A stretch of DNA of 64,000 nucleotides from Chlorokybus atmophyticus (Eukaryota; Plantae; Mesostigma and Chlorokybus algae). Under the pieces are notes generated by a model. That model had not been told where the DNA came from and did no database searches. It worked only from the letters and a program-made list of their open reading frames with translations. Positions 5,301 to 54,405 of the stretch are shown piece after piece (positions within the stretch are counted from its first letter, which is position 1; the number at the start of each line of letters is the position of its first letter). The stretch is taken from assembly GCA_009103225.1 (NCBI GenBank), contig RHPI01003516.1, positions 24,062-88,061 of the forward strand, in the 5' to 3' direction. Position numbers and translations under genes: made by a program.

Positions 5301-7014
5301 TTCCCATTGAGGAGCTGGGGGATGGTTTGCTGGCACGTTGAACCAGGTGTCTTTGTCTCGCCAAGCAGCAAGGTTGTCATATGCGATCGAAGGAACTTGC
5401 AGCCACGGACCGAGTCTTGGACCAATGGGCGTGTACAAAAAATCTATACACTCCTTGCGCGTGCGCCCGCATTCGCCTCCGCACGGCTGTTCCCACAAGC
5501 GTTTCAGAATCTTGTGGCGACTGTCGTCTTGGCAGCTGTCCTCGCAGTCACCGTAGCCTGATGGATAGGCATCTGGAAAGAGATAATTGCATCGTGTGCA
5601 TGCTGTATATCTCTGTGACTCTTGCATTCCGATGGAAGTCAGCAATGCATCGACGGCCGTGATGTCAGCCGGCTTGGAGGGGTTGCGCTGGCCGAGCAAG
5701 GCATGGAGATCGTTACGGAGCTGACTGTAATCGTAGGCGGGATCCTTGGCCAGCTGTACAATGGAGTCTTCGGCACCAAAAACAGTCTTCAGCACGTTGT
5801 TGATTAGTGATTGCTGTGCATGAGAGTCCTCCAAGTCTGTCAGCAACGACATGAACTTGTCCAGCATTTTTTGCGTGGGTGTTTCCGAGGACTGTTGTTG
5901 ACGAGAAGTGCCGGGTTGAGGTGCATCACATTGCGCTGAAGGCATTGGCGGTGGGTGCATACTTTCTCGCGCTGCTTCGTCCAGTCGCATGTGAGCCAAC
6001 GAAGTCTCCAACTCAACCCACTGCCCAATCGCAACATACGACTGTCAATGTAGGTAGCATGGATGGCAATGCTGAAAGTGCGCGCATGGTGCAGTGGGCT
6101 ACGGACAGTCGCAGGCATGCAGCATTCCCAGACATGGGCAGCTACAGTACGACACTGTGCGCGCATCGCAAGTTGATTGCTCACCTTGCCACGACACCTC
6201 GGGCAAGAGCAAATTGTGTAGGACACTTCTTGCCATTGTGGATCATCATCATTGCTACCAAGAGGCTCAAACATGTCTTCAATTGGCATGTCAACAGTCG
6301 GCTGTCGATCCGACTGATGCTGAAGTGGAGCAGTTGCGGCGCTGCTGGGGCTGGGCATGTTGACAGTCGGCTGTGGATCAGCCTGATGTTGAAGTGGAGC
6401 TGTCGCGGCACTGCTGGTGCTGGCAACATCGAAAGTCGGCTGTCCACCTGACTGTTCCCTTTCGTGAAGTGTAGCTGCCGCTTCATTGCTGGTGCCGGCC
6501 AAATCAACAGTCGGCTGTCCAAGCACGGGATGCCTGAAGCAATCTTGCAGTCAGTGACACACCACATGCAATGGCACCATCGGCTGACAGTGGAGATCAC
6601 AGCAAGGCAGCAAGTGCACTAAGTTGATCGACAGTCTCTTAGCATGAAGGCTGTTTATGTACAGCATTCCTATTGTTAGTGGCATGCATACTGTCATGTA
6701 TACTCGATGAAGAGCAGTACGCCAGGTACAACAGCGTGGTCAACTTACTGCTCATGCTGCTGGCTGATGTCGCTATGCTGCCCGAGCATGGCCGGATCTT
6801 CATGGGCGGGCTGAGGGATGACAGCCTCAATGGGCTGGTCATCAACCACATGGTGCTGGACGACATCAGCATGCTCCGGTAAGGGTAGGGAACTCTGTTG
6901 GCTGCGAAGGCGGTTGTTCCTACGAAAGGTGTTCCTCTTACTGGCTGGTTGCAAGTTGATTCCCAGCTTAGTATTAATGTCCTTGGCGAAGCGGACAGCC
7001 TTTTTACTGGCCAT
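2360..7014 (-). pseudogene. EnSpm/CACTA transposase (Tnp2/Transposase_21-like plus DUF4218-like region), multi-exon
   Basis: Motifs WHGSKW...DPRNIGLMLHSDGF...LNPFMKPMVDELEDL (4425-6011 ORF) and DTMHTL...WKAQEH...HLLDNIRRHGSHDVFWCYAAER (3321-4031 ORF). Exon boundaries approximate. Confidence 0.85.
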
Positions 7015-41219: not shown

Positions 41220-43564
41220 CTGAAGTTTATGACGCTAGCCACAATGTTGTTGCAGCTGCATCATGTAACGTCGCATAAAGCAAACATCCGCATGGCTTAA
41301 GCATGCACGAGCAGTTTTGTCTACATATGTCACCTGAAGTTGCTAGTGCAAGCAATGCATAGGACGAGCTGGCTTGTTCGACTCTCCCATCGTACAGGTA
41401 CAGCACGCTTTGACAGAGCCTCGAGCGTTGCTTGGGCTTCACAAAAATCTCCTGCAGGAGCTTGTCCGGACTGTTGCTGTAGCTGATACTAAGAATCACC
41501 GCTCGCATGCGCCCAGAGCAGAGCAAAGCTGAGCTACTACCGCTCCAGGCGACGCACTTGTCGCCGCTGTGGTAATAATGGGAAAGCTCGTGAGCTGACG
41601 GACGGTCATGTCAGTCGAAACGCCCGGGAGAGAGTTTGCCTCTGCGCCGAAGTTGTGAACATCGGCTGCGAGTTGCCGGTGGGTCGGCCCGGCGGTGACA
41701 GGCCAGCCGTTTCTGCTAAGCCTGCGTTGCACCCCATGAGTCAACCGACAGTCGGGCGGATTTCTTGCACGAGCGCCGCCGGCTTGTCGCGTTGTAACGT
41801 TATCGTTATCAACACCTCCAGGTATTGACCTGAACCAACCCGTCCTGTTGATAGCCATGAATGTAAACTTTCGGTTATGTCGTAAAGGCTGGAACTGCAC
41901 GCCCATAATCATCATGGCTTATCATGGCATATACCTGTAGTCGCAGGTAGTATTGTCCTGCTAGTAGAGTGAGTATCGTTCTACGGCGTTATCGTTTAGC
42001 GGCCGCTCGGTAGCAGCAATCAGAGCGCGCCAACGTTGGCGACATGCCCACGCGCCTGCGACCTTAGAATCCGTAGCCGCTGCATGCATGAGCGGCCTGG
42101 AGCAACTTCATAAACGACGACCAGCAGCTGCTGCCACAGTACCAGTGTATAAGTGTAACAATGCCAGTGCATAAGTGTTTTTGCCACCTTTCAGGCAATT
42201 GATATCAAAAAGAGCCCTTCTGGTACTACCACTAATTCATCGGCATGATTCTGCATACTTGGGTACTGATGCAACCACTCCTTGTAAGTGAGCGAGTTTG
42301 AAGCGTGTGTAATATACTCGGAAGCAATCCGACATAGGCCGGCGGCCTCCCCGTCTCCAAAGGGTTGCCTCGCTATGACATGGTCCAGGTTGCTTTACAT
42401 GGCTGGGAGCGAATGACACATGGTTGTCCACAGTCTAGTTGTCGTTCTGTATAATGTGTGCACCATGCGCGGTATAAAGCTGTGAGCTGGGCCTGTGTGC
42501 AAACCCCTGCCCGACATGCCGACCGGGGGCGTCGTCAACAAGGTGTAACTGTGATATTGACCGGACGCTCCAGCCTGACTAACTCTTGAAGGTGAAGTCC
42601 GCGGAGTGCTGTCGCGTCAAGTCTAGCTAGGCCTAAATGCAGCAACACGAGCCTTGTGTAGCCACTGTCACCTGCACACGCAACATGTCACATCACCAGC
42701 GCATCATAATATTGTGAATCAGTTGCACTTTAAGTTGAAGCGTTGTCCCGGTCGTACGTGTGGTTGGTCCATCATGATCTTTGTCATGAGTGCTGATAGT
42801 ATGCGTGCGGGGGAGCAAGCACACACTAGGCATTGTCACTGCCGCCCAGACAGCCTCCTCAGGGCTCGCAGCCTGCTTAGGCACCGTCATCTGTCCCTCA
42901 TTGGCTTCTGTGCTGCCTCCAAGTCAGTCTGTTCACACTTCACTCGCTGATGTCAGCACTAGCAGGCATTGAAAGCCTTGGCCAGCATCGCACACTTAGG
43001 CATACATGCAAGTCACTTGTACACATCATGTAGCCAGATGCTACGCTGGTGGTTGCATCTGCAGAGAACCTTGGTAAACAGTGAGCGGCGTGGCCTCACT
43101 GAGAACTTCCCTCGGTTTGTGCAGGTAGATTGCAAGCTCGGGAAGCGTGTGAGTCTTTGAGCAAGAGCTGGCTGCCGTAGTACTGCGTTGCAGCACAAGG
43201 GTACTTACAGCGCAGTTTGCTGCAACAAAGATCTTGGGGGTCGAGTGCATTAGACGAACTGGCATGCATGAGGCGTTTGATCCGATATGCTGGCTAGCCG
43301 TTTCTTCTCATCTCATGACAATTTATAAGTTGTACATCTGCAAGCTTGAGACCATGTCATTGCTAGCTGAGGTTCATACTGCACACCATGGGGTCGTATT
43401 GTAGTAGTTGACATGGCATATGCCCAGCTTGTTGGCACAGCGGCTGCCATAGCATATTGCATGCTGTCGCATTCATCCTGCAGCCGCCGGTGTAAGACTA
43501 CTAGATCAGCCTGCAAGCTCCATTTAAATGCTTAACACAGCATCATGTCAGCAGTGGTCAGGTC

Positions 43565-45410
43565 ATGACAACATCCTCCATCCGAGTTGTGGTGGCCACT
43601 GCTGTCATTGGGGGCGCCGTTACTGTGGCTGGTGCACTGGTTTTGAAATACTTCAATGAGGCCCAGCTGGCAGCCATGGACCCTTCCAAGCCAGGTATGT
43701 TGGTTGGGCTTGCTTGATTGACAGGGATTACTGCTCCTGTTGATGCTGATTGCGCAAGCGCATTGTGCGATCGTAGGCAGGTGGCCTTATGCACAGCGTG
43801 AGGCGGCCAACCGTAACGGTTTGGAGCTGGGGAACAAGCTCAGAAGTCAGGACTATTTACAAGCAAGAGATGCCATCTTTGCCTTTAAGCATGACTGCGA
43901 AAGCCGCCAGAAATCGTATGCAGATGCCTTCCTCACGGGAGACTGCACATCAGAACAGTACCAGCAGGTGAGCATGCATAGCACTAGCATGCATCTCACC
44001 ATTGACTGCCAGCTTGCAGAAGCTGACCAGCGCTGATGCAATGGTCATAATGTGCGCCTGTATTTATGCAATGCCATTGTTGTGACCGCAGGTGGATGCA
44101 GCGCGCAAGCAAATCTCAGGCATCTGGAGGCAAGCTACCAGAAGTTACAGAGCATGTCAGCTGGCAGACGCTGGCAGCGACATGTTTTCTCGCAACCGCA
44201 GATGGCTTCGCGACAGCAACGAGATGAGGGTGCTAGTAGAACCCATTGATATAGCCAATTGGTACAAGTGCAAGCAGCACCTGCCTGAGAAGGGACCCAA
44301 TGCATACAGTGGACATTACGCAGGTAAGGAAGATGCATGTGTGTGTGCACATGTCTTGGGGATTAGAGTTGCATGCAGGTCATCATGGTGTTTATAGCTA
44401 CCTGTTGTTGGAGCAGATCACATCAGTAAGCCAATCGAAGAGTCCAAGCGGCCGTCTTGGTATGCATTTGTCGAGAGCAAAGCGGAGGCGGAAGGTCTTG
44501 CAGTAGAGAACTCCGTGCAGAAGGCGTTTGAGTATAAGAAGCTGGTGTACGAAGGAAAGCTGGTGTACCAGAGCATTGCAGACGCACGAGCGACGCCTCC
44601 TGTGGGGTTTAAGCGGCTCTCACCTCTGCAGCAACAAGGTGCCACACGCTAGCGCTGGTTGCTCCAGCAGGAAGTGCTTGCACACATGCCATGGGGGGGA
44701 TGATGCTGGAGACTGGCTGACATGCGACCCGTTCGCGCACAGCTGCCACGAGGACAATGGACTGGCAGTACGATGTCTTCATCAGCCATGCTGGCGAAGA
44801 CAAGGAGTTTGCAGACGAGCTGCATCATGACCTGAAGCAGCTGGGCATGAATCCTTTTCTGGACAAGTGTAATCTTGCTGCCGGTGATGCAGCGGATGCC
44901 ATTATGCTTTTTTCTGCAAGAAGAGCTCCCGTGGGTGTGGCAATCATGGGACGCACCTTTTCTGCCAAGACATGGCCAATGAAGGAGTTGTATATTGTGG
45001 TGACTCAGGGCACCCTTCTGCCGGTGGCCCTTGGTATTAGCTATCAGCAGCTTGAGAGCGACCTGCGAGCAAGTCCTCAAAAAAGAACTCTTGGGAAGAC
45101 GGATGAGGAGTGGGAGACCTTTGTCAAACAGGTGGTACGCACTACCATGGTGCTCGACAACAATCAGTATCGAAGGAGATTGCGCGATGAGATTGTGTTC
45201 CACGTGGTGCGAAAGTATGTTGAGATGTGCCCTCAGTTGCCGGACACTAAATGGGGTGCCCGACGCCTTGACACTGCGCTTGCTGCTGTGCGCGGTATCA
45301 ATCCCACCCGCTTTCCAGACCTGCCCGCCGGACAGGTACACGAGGCTCAAAACAAGTGGCTGCCTGGGTTAGAACACATGGTACAAGACAATAGTCACCC
45401 CCGCTCTTAG
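43565..45410 (+). CDS. TM helix + EDS1/PAD4-type EP domain + TIR fusion protein (480 aa model); alternative is a 262-aa EP gene ending 44652 plus a separate TIR gene 44757-45410
   Basis: Exons 43565-43694, 43777-43967, 44092-44323, 44417-44638 and 44743-45410 give an open frame. EP motifs FKHDCE...SYADAF...RKQISGIW...RVLVEPIDIANWYK...GHY...RPSWY. TIR motifs YDVFISHAGEDK...FLD...WPMKEL. Confidence 0.8.
44757..45410 (+). CDS. TIR domain (TIR_2-like), putative catalytic Glu retained
   Basis: YDVFISHAGEDKEFADELHHDLKQLGMNPFLD...SAKTWPMKEL...LLPV. Confidence 0.92.
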   Translation: MDWQYDVFISHAGEDKEFADELHHDLKQLGMNPFLDKCNLAAGDAADAIMLFSARRAPVGVAIMGRTFSAKTWPMKELYIVVTQGTLLPVALGISYQQLESDLRASPQKRTLGKTDEEWETFVKQVVRTTMVLDNNQYRRRLRDEIVFHVVRKYVEMCPQLPDTKWGARRLDTALAAVRGINPTRFPDLPAGQVHEAQNKWLPGLEHMVQDNSHPRS

Positions 45411-47006
45411 CTTGTGTAGTATACATGTTTATAAGCACACGCATGGAATGTATGTTGGTTGCATAAAAACATCAGTCTGACGTGTTCTGCATGTGAGACA
45501 CAATATACGTAACAACACTCAACGAATGCAGTGTGTATATTGTCAACAGATTCAGCAACAAGTACTAAAACATGGGCTGGCGCAAGCTGCTAACATCATA
45601 CAAAAAAACGGCAACATCATCACCATGGTCAGGCGAGCTTGTTGCAGCCTGCACCCCTAGGTCCGCACATCCACATAATCATTAATCATTAAAGCCAAAG
45701 TAAGCATATTGCCCAAAGGGCAAGTGCTCGCTGCGGCTGCGGATATTCTCAGGATAGGAGTTTGACAACGCCTGCAAGTGACACAACTGATTACAATCGA
45801 ACAACTAAGGGTTGTTAGCTTGTTAATGCCGCTTAGCAACTACGAATTTGGCTGAGTTGAAGTAGTATATTTTTTGTATTTACGAACAAAGGTCGCAACA
45901 TACACATACACGCGCACTAGTTACATGCACGGACGCACGCACGCGTGTACACATATGCATATACGTAGGTAGGTAGGTAGGTAGGTAGGGTATGGTAGAT
46001 TGGCTCATAGTATGTAATTACGCAAGTGCGCAAGTATGCAAGTATACAACAGTGTTAATGTGTACTACTCACTTACTTGGAGGTCGGCTTGGCAGATTTA
46101 TGCGCAAGCACAAGGACTGACACATGGAAGTCCTTGTGGATGGATACCATTGGTGCAACATCTGGATGAAGGAATGACCACCACCGCAACGGGAAGGAGA
46201 GGATGGCCGCCAACCTCTCCACTCAGCTTCAGGCACACACACACTCAAGCACATCCCCACACACACGTGCAGAGCTGCCACGGGCACCCCACCCCACTAA
46301 GGATGAGAGGGAGAGCCCCTTTAACACCTAAACTAGGCACCCTACACACAAGACTGAAGTATGCACCTCAAGAGCTGGCCCCACATTTGATGGGACACTC
46401 CTATATACTCCCCCTTGCTGCTCCCCGACCTAGAACACGAATGTCCAAGCCTACATGCACTGGCATTGCTGTGTTGACCGTCATACTTGCCTCGGGGCTG
46501 CCACACATTAGCCTCAGACCTTAATAATGCCTCGGACATTGTGAACGTCCTTAGCTGGTCAGCTGCATAGGCTGACCGTGTAACGGCATCGGTACAGTTT
46601 CAGCATGAGGCGCTGGGTTGTCTCCATCGTCAATAGCGTTTTGTGGGTACCGAGCGCTGCGCTTGCCCGACCAGTGCGCACAATGCAGCTAGCTCGGGTG
46701 GTGCACTGGTGACATGTAAGTCATCGCTGCCAATGGCGTGTGCCTTGCTTGTTGCAACAATCTTAGCTCAACGTGCTTGTTGGCAAACTGAACAGTCACC
46801 GTGAACTGCACGACTTGTTGTCAATCATAGGCGCGTGACTGGTAGCTTTGTATCTGTGTAGCTAGCTCGGCTATTACAGCTGGTTGACATACGGCCAGCG
46901 CTGTTGCCACTTTCAAGCAATCCCCACTGATTTCAGTATTTGACTCTGTGAGCTGAACCGCATTCTACCTACGAAGTAACTACATGTGCACAGAAGGCAG
47001 CCACGC

Positions 47007-48723
47007 ATGCAGCAGCAAACTTCTGCCTTCATCAGCTACTGTCAGAAGGACAAGTCGCATGCGCAATGTGTGCGAAACTTAGCGGACAGATTACAAGCCG
47101 GACGGACTGCGTGTCATTGTGGACTACATGAATGATGGGACAGTGTCGTGGCCTGTCTTTGTCGGACAGATGCTGGAGGACAAGACCAAGGTGCGCACAC
47201 GTAGTCTAGTTGCAACCATTGACCAGCCTCTTGTGACCGCAATTGCACGTATCGTGTGGTGTACTTGAGTTGCTGAGATGCTGGGTGCAGGTCATTGTTG
47301 CCTACGATGAGCACTACAAATACTACTCCCTCAAAGAGCCAGTCTTAGACAACGACATGCTGGGCAGGCGTACTCATGACGAGTACACTAACATCCTTAA
47401 AATGTACGAGCAGCAAAACTTAATGGGCTGGCTGGTGCCAGTAATTTTTAGGCCTCCTGGTGAGAGAAGCCACGTGCCCAGCCAGAGTTAAATTCACTTA
47501 TTACTCCATCAATTAGCAAGACAAGGTCAGAGACAGGGTTTTGACTGTCACTTAAGCTTGCTGACTTGCTAATGAGGAACTATCAGACGGCTTTAGTTGA
47601 CCTAAAGGTGAGCTTCCCCTGATGTCGCGCATGAGCATGCGTGTGCATACGCATTCTGTTTAAGTAGTTATGAGCGGTATTTGATCAACATGGTTGCATG
47701 GTGAACCCTGCTGAATAAGAATACGACGACCTGCTGAGGCACTTGCATAGCATCTCACCGTTTATGACAGCAGCTGGAGCTACTGCCACTACGGGGGCGC
47801 CAGCCAGTGCTGCTCCACACGACAGGTAATGGTTGCTGCAGACCAACAGAAGGTCGTCGACAGATGCAATTGTTTGCACCAGCTGCTTTTGGGATGGCAG
47901 TTACGCAATCTTGTGTTTTAGTCCTTCACCTCGCAGTCCTTCACCTCAACACACTGGCAAGCAAGTTCGTAAGTCCGCTACCAGTGCGTTTCCTGGAAAA
48001 ATTGATGAGAAGGCTATGCATGAGTCGCAGATCTTTAACAGCAGCTGCTCTTGCCAGCTCTTCGTCACAGGCGTACTTGTCAATCAAAGAGCTGTTTGAC
48101 AACGAGGGCACTTTCAACAATCTCTGGAGGGACAACGCTCAACCTGCATTGGACAGGCTTTGAAAGTTTGAAAGAACTTCCTCAGATATCTACGTCAGAT
48201 TTCGCTCTTATAAACAAGATTGCAGCCCTGAAGCGAAGCTCCTGCAGCCTGTAAAAGGGGCGCGCAGGTATGAGCCTATTGTGTTGCTTGCAGCTACCTT
48301 GCACGGGCACACGTCAGTGCACGCATCCACGTTTGCACAGCCTCGTTGTTGCCTATGACCACCCCTTCTCTTCCATTGTGTACTTGCAGGGTGGTTAAAG
48401 ACTTCTGGTACAAGGCGTGGAATTGGTACACAACCGGACTGCTGCCTGTGGATTTTTTTAGCAACAGCAAGCCCTCGGGTGCCAGAGGGAACACCTGCAA
48501 ACTTTTCGCGGAACCCATTGATATTGCGAATTATTACCGCCTGAAGCTGTGGGAGCAGTGGCCGGAAGGCAATCGTCACTACCTGGAGGCGAACAACCGC
48601 CCAGTCCAATACGTGTTTCTGGAACTTCAGTACAAGAAGCACAACCCCTATAGCGTTGCACCCTTGTCAACGGCGCATGCGCTTCGTGAAGCAGACGCGG
48701 TTGAGGCCAGAGCGCATCTGTAG
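47007..48723 (+). pseudogene. SEFIR-like TIR + EP-domain fusion gene with a frameshift and a premature stop
   Basis: Exon 47007-47190 AFISYCQKDKSHAQCVRNLADRLQ[+1 nt at about 47098]DGLRVIVDY; exon 47291-about 47459 VIVAYDEHY...THDEY...LVPVIF; exon 48071-48267 with TGA at 48161; exon 48390-48723 DFW...LPVDF...LFAEPIDIANYYR...HYLEANNRPVQY. Confidence 0.8.
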
Positions 48724-50239
48724 AGGGTGCTTGCTTGCGAGCACTAAAGCTGCGGCAAGCAGCCATGCTTTCAATTGCCATCTTGGGTGAGTCGCTTTGT
48801 AAAGCTAGATTGCAACTCTGCCATAACACTGCGCAAGGCGGCTATCGATGTACGTACAGGACTGAGTAGAGTAGATGGTTAAAAAGCCAACAGAGACTTA
48901 GCGCACTGCAGTAGTAGTGCAAAACCAGAACTCATCACGCAGTTCCAAGGACTTTATGCAACACAATATCATGCGCCGACATGTCCACCATACACTTGTT
49001 GACATTGCTAGCTTCATGTGTAGTCAAGTATAACACATGTCTCCAAGTTAGTGTGGACACCAGAATTGTGTAAGACTGTTGCTCCAGCAAGTCTACTTTA
49101 CAAGTGATACTGGATGTTGAAGAGAGCCTTACGCAGCAGGTACAAGGCCTAAGCGCTTCTACGCACATAAGGCCTGCAGTGCATGGTAATCCCTCCATAC
49201 TTCCTTGGTGGCACAACTGCTTGCGGATGAGGCAAACGTGATTCAAGCTTGTACCTAGCAGCCTCAGCAAACACCTGTCCAATTCAAGTGACGCAAGGTT
49301 GGGGTGTCCATTGGGGGCTGGGCTTTATAAAACTGTCATCTTGTACATGAGCTTAAATACGCTCTTCCTTGGCATGCAGTCCTTGAAAGGATTTCCGTGG
49401 TCAGTGTGCACAAGCCCCCCGCAACACGCCACTGCATTCTTGTTAATTGATTGAGCATGGTTGTTTATGTGCCACGCTGCGGTGTGCAGTTGCAGTCTCG
49501 AGCTGCAATAGCACTATAGCAGGGTAGTACTACAGCGCTTTAGTTAAGTAGCATGTGTGACAATGGCTGCAGCCATGAGAGCAACATTTGCCGTGCATGC
49601 AATGTTGTATGGTAAGCATTTCCATATCTGCAAGCTACAACTGCTCTCTCTGCACACTAGCATATATGTCAAGCCTGCTCAACTGAACTGCCAAGCCAAT
49701 TGAATGATTTTCAAAAATTGGTAGAGGTGCACAAATGGACGTAACTAGCAGCTGGACTTTTCGGCAGGGGTTCTGGGCAGCTATGTAGAGGATTTCAGTA
49801 GGAGTAAAGCGCCCTGGAAATTTGCAATCTGTTTAGACATATAGTGCAAACCACTCAGAGTTGCTGTCTTCGTTTGCATTGGCATTCATAGATGCCCTCA
49901 ACTCCCTGCACCGAATAAGTCACGCTGACTGCAGAATGTGTCACCACCAAGCTTGTAGGGCACACAATGCTTGGCCCACAATGTCTCAACCCACCAGCAT
50001 GCAGGGTCGCGAGCAGGGTAGTCGTTTGCACTGGTTATGCAGTAAGCTTCAACAACGTGTGCTTGATTATCCAGAAAAGTGTATGACAGCCAGCTACCTG
50101 CGTGACAAGCAAAATGGTTGGTACAGACAAAGGTAGTTTGGCAGAGGGAAACGTGTGCAGGTCTGAACCAGGTTTGTGTTGGCTATGCATGTTACTTGCA
50201 TACGCAATTTGTGTCCATGACAACATCCATGTGAGCCTG

Positions 50240-53200
50240 TCACTCACTCCAATCATCTGAAGTTCTGAAGGCAAGCCATTTAGTCTGGACATGGCCATTA
50301 AATGCGTAGATACCCAGCTCGTGCGGACGCCTTTCACCTGAGCACTTTACCCACCCACCAGCTATGCGTGGGCCAGGTGTTGCCAGCTGCCTCCAATGCT
50401 TGATGCTGCCAATCTGTGTTGCTGTTTCCTCTACAACATCCAGCGAGCCTGCAATGCACGTCTGTGAGTCCCTAGAATTCCACCATATGGGTGATTCTGT
50501 TATAACCCATCTGGTGGGATGGGTAATCACAGAATATGGGACAGCAATCGGAGATATTCCGGAAGACATCGAGTCCCTCAGCAAGGACCGTTTATGCATC
50601 CACTGGTAAGGGCTCAAGCTACAACTGCTCCCGGGAAACTCTCTTGAGCGAGAATTCATCAAGCCAGTTGCTAAGGGCCGCATCTGTGGCATCTGCTATG
50701 TAGCGCCGCAGCTGCTTGTGCATTGCGTTGATGATGCGACTCGCGGCTTCATCTCAAGCGGGAAGTCTATCCGCTCAACAATGCCAAGGGGTCAGCAGCA
50801 TTCCTTGTGCGCCTGCCATTGATGAGCAAAGAAGAGGCCATGAACAGTGATGACACAACACAGATGAGAGAGCATGATGCTTGTCCTACCCTTGAACTTT
50901 GCCATCCGGAATATTGTGGCAACTCGTCTGAACTTGCTGCTTGCTTTTCGCTCCAACTGCGCTTCTAGCTGCCATACAAGCTTTTTACACTTGTGAAGAT
51001 GCTCAGGCACCTCGACTAAGTTGTTTCCCCAGATTTGCAACTCCTCCAAATGCTGCAACGACTCCAGCTCTGGTAGGTTGTTTAGCTTATTACAATCGAG
51101 CACCAACTTCTTCAACGCTTTCAAGCGATTGACTTCTTGAGGTAGCTCGACCAGGTCGTTTTGTGACACATCTAGCATTTTCAGGTAATGGAGTTCCCAC
51201 AGCTCAATTGGCAATGATGATAAACGAGTGTTGCCTAGAAATAGATAGCGGAGGTCTTTCATCTTGCAAACCTGCAATAAAGAATAAGCTGTTGCGGCAC
51301 AGATTGGGGATTGGGAAGGGGGCCATATGCAATGCACTGAGCGCAGGTGCACTGAGCTGCAGGAGAGATGCGCATTAACTACCAGCTGTTGCTCATATGC
51401 CCGAATCTGCAATGTTGTTCGTCAGTACATGTGCTAGCATCGCACGCCCCTCACTTGCTGTATCAAGCCTTCTGGATTGCAATCGACATCTATTGATCGC
51501 CAATGCTCGAGTTGCGGGAGCTCCATGCTCGGATGGCACGCAACTTGTTGCAGAAGTCAAAACTAAGGTAGACCAGCTTATGCAGAGTTAGACAACCTGT
51601 GGTGGGTACTGTGAGGGACGTCAAGGATGCGCAATAGGAGAGATCCAATATCTGCAACAGTCGCGAGATCAGTGGCATACATGCATGCATGCAGCATACG
51701 CGGGCAGTGAGTGAGCTGCACCTGCAGGTTTTTGAACTTGTTTAAGTCCGGCAGAATGACAAGTCTACCGCAACGTGACAAGATCAGCGTTTGCAGTGAG
51801 GGCAGCTGCACAGAAGCGGAATGATGAGAGGGTTTGAGGTGAGCGGCCATGCATTCCGTTGCAACCGTTCCTGCCATCATACTCTCCGTCTATACGCAAC
51901 TCACTTGGATATGTGCCTTTGCATCCCAGAGGTGCTTGAAGCTACTAACGGACAAGTCCAGCGCACAGAGCTTGTTGTAAACCGCTGCTCTGGTCACTTG
52001 CACGTTGTGCAGCATGTTCACTTGCAATGATACCAAGTGCTGTGCACTGCCCTTCATAATAAGATATGAAGCACGATTCACAGCCAGTAGCCGCAGGCCT
52101 TGGCCGAGGTCATGCGGTACAACAAGGTCGCGCTCTCGTTCAATCTTGATATCCATGAAAACACCCTGCACATCGCACTTGACAGTTAGCCAGCCAGCCT
52201 CAGAACTGATCGAGTGGATGCTATGCCAGTTATTATACTCCTGACATAAACCGCGGCGCTCTGTGACAGCAACACGACGTACATAATAAGGAGCGCAGAT
52301 CTGCACACATTGCGCCGTTTACTAAATAACGTGCAGCAAACCTGCAAAAAGGTTGCGCTGACATCATGTAATGTTGCAGACTTGAGACTTGTACGCTGTT
52401 GCGGCACTGCCAATTGTTTTATGTGCATTCCTAAAGTTATCATCAGATCGTGCATCACCAAAGTTTTGCCGGCGATCTCTGGGTGTTCTTCCACGCTTAT
52501 AAGGGAGCTGTCTTGCAGGCTGCGTAGCGCACCAGGCACTCCCCTGCCAAAATCTGCAAGATCCGCAGGGGTGGTCCAAATGTACACTCCAGCCCGATAA
52601 CCAATAAAAGTGCGTAAGAATGGATAGCACGCCAGGTCTAAGAAAAAAAAAAAAATAAAAAAAAAAATGCATTGCATTCCCTGTCTTGCATGAGGGTCAA
52701 GCTAAACAACAGGATGCTGAAGATGGCATCTTCCTTCTCCCCATGCACACTCTGCACGTCTGTTAGCCACTCCAGGCAGCGCAAAAACTCAGATAAACCT
52801 TTCCTGTGCAGCGCACTTCCAATCACCCGTAGTGCCAGTGGCAATCCATTGCACGCCTCCACCACTATTCTAATGACGGGTGCACACACTCGAGGCAATC
52901 GACTACGCTCAACTGCAGCGTATGCGTGCTCGTGCAGCTTGTCACAAAGGAAAAGGTGACTTTGGTTGAACTTGTCCGTACGAGCGTTGTCAATGATGCT
53001 AGCAAACTCGGCCTGTTCCTTGCGGGTGTGCTGCCGGTATGCATGTCTGCAAAACAGGATGACAGCGTCTAGTGGCTCTAAAGACGACACTTGCACGATT
53101 CCCACATTCTCCGGGTACTCCAGGCACGTGCGCTTCCAGGATGTGAGGATCACCTTGCTGCCTGCAGCCACGGCCACCAGCAACATTTCCGCCTGCAGCT

Positions 53201-54405
53201 TATCTATAATATTGTCAACGACAAGCAAAACTTGCTTGTTTTTTAGGCGTTCTTTTAATAACTGTCATCTATCCTGCAGATCGAGCCCGACTTTGGCATC
53301 GGCAGAGGTCTTACAGAGGGCCTCCAGCATTGCTTGCTGCTGTTCCTCCAGTGACGCGGTGCTCTCTCTTAAATCAAGTGTGATGTAGCAGCTCCTTCCG
53401 CAATAGTCTGCGGCAAAGTGGTTGTACACATGCTTGGCTATGGTAGTCTTGCCCACACCTCGCATGCCAAGCAGTCCCACCACCCTGTGTGTGTTTCCAA
53501 AAGCTTAATAACAGGTGCAGAGCATGCATGGATATCCACAGCCTCAACTTCAGCCACGCGCTTATGAAGTATGCTCAGCTTCTGGCAGACCCTATGGACA
53601 ACTTCTTGAACAAGTTGCAATTTAATCCTGCACATGCAACAATATCAGCAAGCAGCATCTCAAGCGAACGATGATGCGAGGAACTTGAGCACACAGTGTT
53701 CGCAGAACACGGCTAACAGTAGTTTGCTGGCATACAGTCAGGTTCCAGCACCTGAAGCTTCAAGCACTATCAGATGCCGCCAGCTCAGCAGCACGCAAGT
53801 TATACAGACACTGCCAACCAAACTGAGGCGAGTGGAGGCTAGGGTCAGCACTAGTACTGGTGCCCGCAGCCTTCCAAGCCCTTGCTGTGAGAGAGAGGCT
53901 TAGGAGACGGTGCGAGCTGCCCGGGAGAGGGGGGGGGGGGGGGGGGGGGGGNTTCTGCAGCCTGTTATGTCAAAAAGCTTTGCCATAGCTTGTCGCCATT
54001 CACCTCTTTTCTCCTCGTCCATCTGTCGCCCTTCTCTTATTGCTTGCTGCTTGCTCTCGTAAATTCTTAAACCGTTGTATATTTTCTTTCTCTTTATCTT
54101 TTTCTTAGTTTTTGTGACGCTTGTCACTCCAGTAGAACACGGGTACAATGTCTTTGTTTTGGTTAACCGCTTTCACCAGCTGTCAGGCAGTCTATTGACT
54201 CCAAAAACCGCCTTGAGAGGATGACAACGACAACCTGTGCAGCGCTCAAGGCGTCCAACATGCTTCGCTGCGCACTTGGGCTCCCTTTCAGATCGTTGTC
54301 ATCAAGAAAGGGTTTGATATAATAGCTGGTGCGTTGCAGCTCCTTATAGATATACGAGGCGATTGTTGTCTTGGTGTCAGGCCCTCGATGGCATATAAAA
54401 ACATT
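50240..54405 (-). pseudogene. TIR-NB-ARC-LRR (TNL) immune receptor, degraded
   Basis: TIR VFICHRGPDTK...PFLD...VPVFY...WRQAM; P-loop GMRGVGKTT; Walker B LLVVDN; GSKVILTS; CNGLPLAL; FLDLACY; MHD; LRR exons at about 50890-52270. Frameshifts at 54180 and 54131, TGA at 53265, poly-A at 52643-52667. 3' boundary uncertain. Confidence 0.9.

Follow-up and report, generated by a model that had tools for sequence, protein, structure and literature searches.

A probable SEFIR-EP pseudogene beside a TM-EP-TIR gene in the alga Chlorokybus atmophyticus

Introduction

The EP domain is regarded as the defining feature of the EDS1 family of seed plants. How organisms other than seed plants read TIR signals is a question on which one locus of the alga Chlorokybus atmophyticus, together with its intact paralogues, bears. 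The locus (47007-48723) lies in intron-bearing eukaryotic DNA, within a stretch of 64,000 nucleotides that was analysed as a whole and is called the window here. The original prediction described it as a second EP gene, disrupted by an extra base and a stop codon, in which a SEFIR-type TIR domain precedes EP, the reverse of the order in a neighbouring gene. The question is whether this architecture is real and whether the locus still encodes a working protein.

In EDS1-PAD4, the EP domains bind pRib-ADP made by TIR domains (10.1101/2022.04.01.486681), and bacterial anti-phage proteins use an N-terminal SEFIR domain to deplete NAD+ (10.1101/2022.05.11.491447; 10.1101/2024.02.11.579819). According to a 2026 preprint, nothing beyond "short EP-like sequences" has been reported from green algae (10.64898/2026.05.20.726525). 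A literature search found no paper combining SEFIR and EDS1, and no description of an EP fusion in Chlorokybus was found in the available portions of the literature on EDS1 and that alga.

Coding remnants of the SEFIR-EP copy

All peptide strings quoted in the original prediction were found in the plus strand translation of 46950-48800, so the SEFIR/TIR-like and EP motifs are indeed present. When the intact paralogue P0002 (described below) was compared with the 64-kb window by tblastn, three pieces of the copy aligned with its SEFIR domain (PF08357) at E 2e-28 and the EP exons aligned at E 2e-48. Overall, 186 of 315 aligned residues of the copy are identical to P0002 (59%). Judged from these alignments, the similarity is far beyond chance. 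The following parts were recognised.

47007-47096, plus strand: exon 1 part 1, in which the SEFIR/TIR-like domain begins with its FISYC strand and its first helix, from tblastn with P0002
47101-47190, plus strand: exon 1 part 2, SEFIR domain in the shifted frame, from tblastn with P0002 and P0004 and from translation
47191-47290, plus strand: intron 1, GT..AG, spliced in RNA, an X1 contig showing the joint 47188/47289 (cut +2)
47291-47485, plus strand: exon 2, SEFIR core (VIVAYDEHY, THDEY, LVPVIF), from tblastn with P0002 and a continuous RNA contig
47719-47825, plus strand: linker exon remnant between SEFIR and EP, YDDLLRHLHSISPFM, from tblastn with P0004 and P0002
48071-48267, plus strand: EP exon, first EP-domain helices, containing a TGA, from tblastn with P0002
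48268-48389, plus strand: intron, GT..AG, phase 2, placed by homology, with splice sites read from the sequence
48390-48723, plus strand: last EP exon, open frame with EPIDIANYY and HYLE..NRP motifs, from tblastn with P0002, Pfam and PDB
48787-49136, plus strand: 3' UTR intron, GT..AG, beginning 64 nt past the stop codon, spliced in an X1 contig

Exon 1 part 1 carries AFISYCQKD...RLQ in one frame and matches residues 68-92 of P0002 with 60% identity (alignment 47022-47096); the first 31 residues of the exon gave a Pfam SEFIR E-value of 0.13. DGLRVIVDY...EDKTK follows in the next frame over, the alignment with P0002 extending to 47193, and exon 2 is 63.5% identical to P0002 residues 115-187. 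The linker remnant was matched by residues 478-492 of P0004 (E 2.5e-4 in a tblastn search of 700 bases) and by residues 212-226 of P0002 (alignment 47722-47766). The EP exon that follows is 42% identical to P0002 residues 236-308. Beyond the phase 2 intron the alignment with the paralogues is picked up again at 48388-48391 in a different frame, and the last EP exon, in which LFAEPIDIANYYR...HYLEANNRPVQY is located, is 64% identical to P0002 residues 308-415 and ends with a stop codon at 48721-48723.

A search of the upstream region 45470-47010 for the N-terminal hydrophobic exon gave chance-level matches only, and the EP domain of the neighbouring gene, used as a tblastn query against 47460-48390, detected nothing besides the last exon. 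Pfam searches with single-exon pieces of 30 and 56 residues gave no match; the domain type was therefore settled only via the paralogues.

Intact paralogues with the same domain order

Exhaustive HMMER searching, with the last exon as query, retrieved 37 proteins, of which the best four were Chlorokybus atmophyticus models (EukProt/JGI). Uninterrupted predicted gene models include P0002 (Chrsp103S01043, 415 aa), which has a hydrophobic N-terminus, and P0043 (Chrsp235S03603, 416 aa). An N-terminal LRR region is added in P0004 (Chrsp114S01646), while P0003 and P0044 are partial paralogue models. P0002 matched Pfam SEFIR with 41 bits (cutoff 23), TIR_2 with 37.7 bits and EDS1_EP with 39.6 bits, all above threshold, and EDS1_EP scores of the intact paralogues (32-44 bits) lay above the gathering score throughout. 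SEFIR followed by EP in one chain, as had been proposed for the copy, is thus real in this genome via its intact paralogues. Word-based searches with the whole of P0002 or with its SEFIR region, which are of limited sensitivity, returned Chlorokybus models only and gave no SEFIR-EP chain outside this alga.

The copy shares domain order, motifs and EP clade with P0002, P0043 and P0004. It differs from them in having two frameshifts, several stops and a much longer branch in the EP tree, and in lacking the N-terminal hydrophobic exon.

The assignment of the N-terminal domain to the SEFIR type held up in the intact family. Besides the Pfam score of P0002, the best PDB sequence match of the family profile for this domain was the bacterial SEFIR structure 5y8f (E 1.6e-3), and the nearest language-model (Atlas) clusters were bacterial SEFIR/TIR_2 clusters (0.94). 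The SEFIR proteins of Bacillus cereus (PDB 5y8f/5y8e) and the anti-phage SEFIR protein of Bacillus sp. NIO-1130 carry the domain N-terminally, as in the algal family, but bacterial SEFIR proteins have other C-terminal domains, never EP. The glutamate of THDEY is conserved and is a candidate catalytic residue, in a part of the P0002 model where pLDDT is below 50.

Comparison of the EP domain with EDS1, PAD4 and SAG101

The resemblance of the last exon to PAD4 noted in the original prediction was borne out, as PAD4 was its sole match among 177,635 PDB sequences (E 0.0036 over 75 residues). The same exon matched Pfam EDS1_EP (PF18117) with E 0.008; its 16.3 bits fall short of the gathering score (23.1). 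With the family profile the PDB matches were PAD4 (3.7e-4) and EDS1 (2e-3). An AlphaFold model of P0002 reached pLDDT above 90 in the EP part and was poor in the second half of SEFIR. Foldseek comparison of this model with the PDB gave PAD4, EDS1 or SAG101 for all of the top 20 matches, with E down to 1e-5; these superpositions were local, covering about 150-174 columns at 2.2-3.2 A. SPARTA TIR-APAZ and Act1/IL-17R SEFIR chains were ranked after the top 20.

An EP-type helical domain is therefore common to the seed-plant EDS1 family and the family of the copy. The algal proteins differ from the EDS1 family in that neither the copy nor the paralogues have a Lipase_3 match, SEFIR/TIR_2 taking the N-terminal position, and in that the algal EP is short: the Pfam EDS1_EP match in the paralogues covers model positions 27-122 of 211, the protein ending soon after, and the full length of ~211 Pfam positions is not reached.

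The residues of EDS1-PAD4 that contact pRib-ADP include Asp469, Asn472, Tyr473 and Arg493 of EDS1 and Lys380, Tyr383 and Phe387 of PAD4 (10.1101/2022.04.01.486681). In an ungapped profile match to EDS1 446-475, the first three correspond to positions within DIANY, the best-conserved motif of the algal EPs, and the copy retains this motif at 48520-48534. The equivalent of EDS1 Arg493 is Gln in the copy and Tyr in the paralogues, and by alignment the three PAD4 contacts are not conserved in the paralogues. As DIANY is kept but these other contacts are not, ligand binding by the algal EP is plausible from the sequence, and the ligand may differ from pRib-ADP.

Disabling lesions and divergence of the copy

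The copy contains two frameshifts and two or more premature stops, with its introns retained.

47097-47100, plus strand: lesion 1, frameshift, with four bases in place of a single codon of the paralogues, from tblastn with P0002
47478-47516, plus strand: lesions 2 and 3, second frameshift near 47480 followed by stops, from alignment and codons
48161-48163, plus strand: lesion 4, in-frame TGA, from tblastn with P0002, seen in the genome assembly alone with no RNA contig over the site

At lesion 1 one tblastn segment ends at 47096 and the next starts at 47101 in the new frame, in agreement with the extra base that had been placed near 47098. After the second frameshift a TAA (47489-47491) lies in the old frame and a TAG (47514-47516) in the new one. 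The frame-0 peptide PARVKFTYYSIN, which ends in a stop, aligns with PAQIRKFSYFTLGD of P0002, and its score was reached by only six of 2000 shuffles. The TGA at 48161-48163, which had been correctly recognised as in frame, aligns with Gln272 of P0002, a residue that is invariant in five paralogues. The lesions are consequently not limited to the two first described, the second frameshift and the stops following it being additional; four or more of them are disabling, and the reading of this locus as a second, functional EP gene was not upheld. For splicing out of the TGA at 48161, the only candidate GT..AG pair gives an intron of ~22 nt, which is too short.

Constraint on the copy was judged by proxies, namely changes at sites invariant among the paralogues and branch length. 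By these measures 59 of 190 invariant sites (31%) were changed in the copy, 22 of 79 in the last EP exon, and in the EP tree the copy fell within the SEFIR-EP clade on a terminal branch of 0.58, compared with 0.01-0.16 for the paralogues, i.e. 4 to 60 times longer. In the last EP exon 125 codons remain open, and where conserved sites have changed the replacement is mostly conservative. These features suggest that part of the divergence probably predates the loss of function. The open last EP exon may also still give rise to a residual product.

RNA evidence

RNA was assessed as Logan contigs from four runs mapped to 43500-49000; these contigs are assembled with rare variants dropped, so that a low-abundance transcript or allele in the correct frame may have escaped them. 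RNA word depth was 4-15 over the copy and 170-390 over the neighbouring gene, so that the copy reached a few percent of the depth of its neighbour, and there was none over 47732-48283.

One contig covers 47064-47188, has intron 1 spliced out and runs unbroken through 47289-47616, identical to the genome. It crosses the second frameshift, the TAA and the donor formerly supposed at 47459. The paralogues and the contig both continue beyond 47458, where exon 2 had been thought to end, and the exon model proposed for 47460-48070 was wrong. Over 47064-47188 the contig matches the genome without an indel, and lesion 1 is therefore not an assembly slip; given the exact match throughout, both frameshifts are real in RNA. 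A second contig (X1) begins at 48341 inside the last intron, passes the stop codon and splices out 48787-49136, its loose end at 48786 resuming at 49137. None of the contigs from the four runs covers 47617-48340, which includes the linker remnant and the TGA, and none links the SEFIR and EP parts of the copy. The RNA thus bore out both frameshifts, while the SEFIR and EP parts of the predicted gene were left unlinked.

The neighbouring TM-EP-TIR gene and a chimeric public model

43554-45469, plus strand: expressed neighbour encoding a membrane anchor, EP and a canonical TIR, a separate gene, from RNA contigs and Pfam

RNA of the neighbour has four GT..AG introns and its own poly(A) at 45469, and the protein matched Pfam EDS1_EP with 48.9 bits and TIR_2 with 50.5 bits. 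A contig from X3 differed at 14 of 151 positions in the last exon of this gene (45230-45380); its source might be another allele, a paralogue, or a different Chlorokybus strain included in that study.

EP precedes TIR in the neighbour, the reverse of the SEFIR-EP order, and its TIR is canonical (Pfam TIR and TIR_2). As had been noticed, the TIR of the copy is unlike that of the neighbour: no pairwise similarity was found between the SEFIR domain and the neighbour's TIR (BLASTP E 1.4), and the two match different Pfam models. The EP domains of the copy and the neighbour are 31% identical over 90 residues (E 5e-4) with a common core motif, which is also present in the TM-EP-only paralogues P0025 and P0031; these group with the neighbour in the other EP subfamily. 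A branch with 94/89 support separates the two EP domains in the tree, and EPs of other algae occur on either side of it. Given unrelated TIRs, different EP subfamilies and reversed order, two independent TIR-EP fusions, as originally proposed, are the economical reading of these sequence comparisons.

A public model, Chrsp5S06985 (P0001, 640 aa; EukProt/JGI), maps to 43565-45335, 47083-47193 and 48391-48720 and leaves out the whole sequence from "NILKM" in exon 2 up to the last EP exon. Each of its jumps is contradicted by RNA, and the model is a predictor's chimera of the neighbour and fragments of the pseudogene.

Interpretation of the locus

These data indicate that 47007-48723 is probably an unprocessed pseudogene, a duplicated, intron-bearing copy of the SEFIR-EP family. 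In a single chain, the intact members of the family combine a hydrophobic N-terminus with a bacterial-type SEFIR domain and, after a linker, a short helical EP domain of the EDS1/PAD4 type. By analogy with bacterial SEFIR defence, SEFIR may serve in them as an NAD-consuming or oligomerising signalling module; by analogy with EDS1-PAD4, EP may bind a nucleotide signal or a partner, and would perhaps pair with the other EP subfamily encoded next door. On this reading the copy has lost its frame twice, has gained premature stops and is without a detectable N-terminal exon; weak transcription and partial splicing persist, but the two-domain protein can no longer be made. The architecture and the two fusions of the original prediction therefore stand, and the functional locus does not.

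It is unlikely that the copy now acts as two small transcription units, a SEFIR fragment reading to the TAA at 47489 and an EP-only mini-protein of ~122 residues that starts at an ATG (48355) in a former intron and may regulate or decoy EP-EP pairing. The RNA does fall into two islands with a gap between them (47064-47616, and 48341-48988 spliced to 49137 onward), the second beginning 14 nt 5' of this ATG, and the EP exon retains its frame and has its 3' intron spliced. However, depth is very low, holes in contig coverage prove nothing, the small open reading frame lacks the first helices of the EP fold in the P0002 model, and the proportion of invariant sites changed in the last exon stands against it. 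In addition, an exon junction 64 nt beyond the stop codon, as found here, is a classic trigger of nonsense-mediated decay.

A gene that is intact and functional is very unlikely; its lesions would then be artefacts of the assembly or of the strain, or would be spliced out in transcripts missed by the contigs. In its favour, the domain-coding exons keep 59% identity to P0002, splicing of intron 1 is correct and the TGA at 48161 is known from the genome assembly alone. Against it, all four lesions would need to be artefacts, both frameshift regions and the TAA recur without any difference in independent RNA contigs, and neither around the frameshifts nor around the TGA is there a GT..AG pair that would give an intron of plausible length. 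That the exons belong to the neighbour, which would then encode TM-EP-TIR followed by a partial SEFIR and the last EP exon, has the existence of the 640-residue model Chrsp5S06985 in its favour and is nevertheless extremely improbable. Transcripts of the neighbour pass the donor at 45335 and run to their own stop and to the poly(A) at 45469; no RNA contains the joints 45335/47083 or 47404/48391, the contig being continuous across 47404; and the model enters SEFIR in mid-domain near the first frameshift and skips every lesion, as a predictor would.

Interpreted as a pseudogene, the copy provides evidence for birth and death in the SEFIR-EP family, as in other immune gene families, and it adds cluster context and a warning of a chimeric public gene model. 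Together with the paralogues, it indicates that EP was joined to TIR-type domains on two occasions in an early-branching streptophyte alga, the two fusions having opposite domain orders and TIR types that are unrelated to each other. This argues for an old functional link between EP and TIR.

Cluster context and possible EP pairs

50795-54405, minus strand: TIR-NB-ARC-LRR gene, convergent to the pseudogene, from Pfam

This gene matched TIR with 36.6 bits (54205-54405), NB-ARC with 40.9 bits (52641-53228) and LRR with 63 bits (50795-51412), and the wider context fits an immune cluster. In a tblastn alignment a stop codon adjoins the start of its TIR.

The window holds one gene of each EP subfamily, the neighbour lying 1.5 kb upstream of the copy. 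On Chrsp103, P0002 and P0031 have adjacent JGI model numbers (626 and 627); on Chrsp114, P0004 and P0025 are models 1185 and 1191, six to seven models apart. SEFIR-EP and TM-EP genes are thus close at three loci, two of them placed by model numbers only. By analogy with EDS1-PAD4, TM-EP(-TIR) and SEFIR-EP genes might be kept side by side as heterodimeric EP pairs with the TIR/SEFIR enzyme in cis, the copy being a recently lost partner; this suggestion is a doubtful one, and if true it would represent a self-contained ancestral form of TIR-to-EP signalling.

EP sequences in other organisms

Outside Chlorokybus, EP exons collinear with lipase-like exons were observed in Elliptochloris bilobata (GCA_040144335.1, JALJOU010000074.1; L004:1834-5610, plus strand), and the same collinearity was present in the metagenome contigs L002:1592-5563 (plus strand; ERZ26858887) and L003:2059-5387 (plus strand; ERZ26867466). 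The EPs of these three sequences belong to the subfamily nearest the SEFIR-EP clade, and the lipase-like exons include the GHSLG elbow. The best PDB matches of the lipase exons were PAD4 and EDS1, with OsPAD4 at E 1.3e-9 for L002 and 6e-8 for Elliptochloris; ordinary class-3 lipases reached only E 0.8. On this sequence evidence chlorophyte algae seem to have a genuine lipase-EP (EDS1-type) gene, annotated by NCBI as two genes. The piece following the lipase in L002 gave no EDS1 match in a PDB sequence search, and it bears what we take to be a resemblance to the FGTY motif of EDS1. TIR/TIR_2 open reading frames lie within a few kb of EP open reading frames in L001 (GCA_030012885.1, JASCQV010002970.1; 1469-1972, minus strand, and 6001-6732, plus strand) and in L003 (6668-6976, plus strand).
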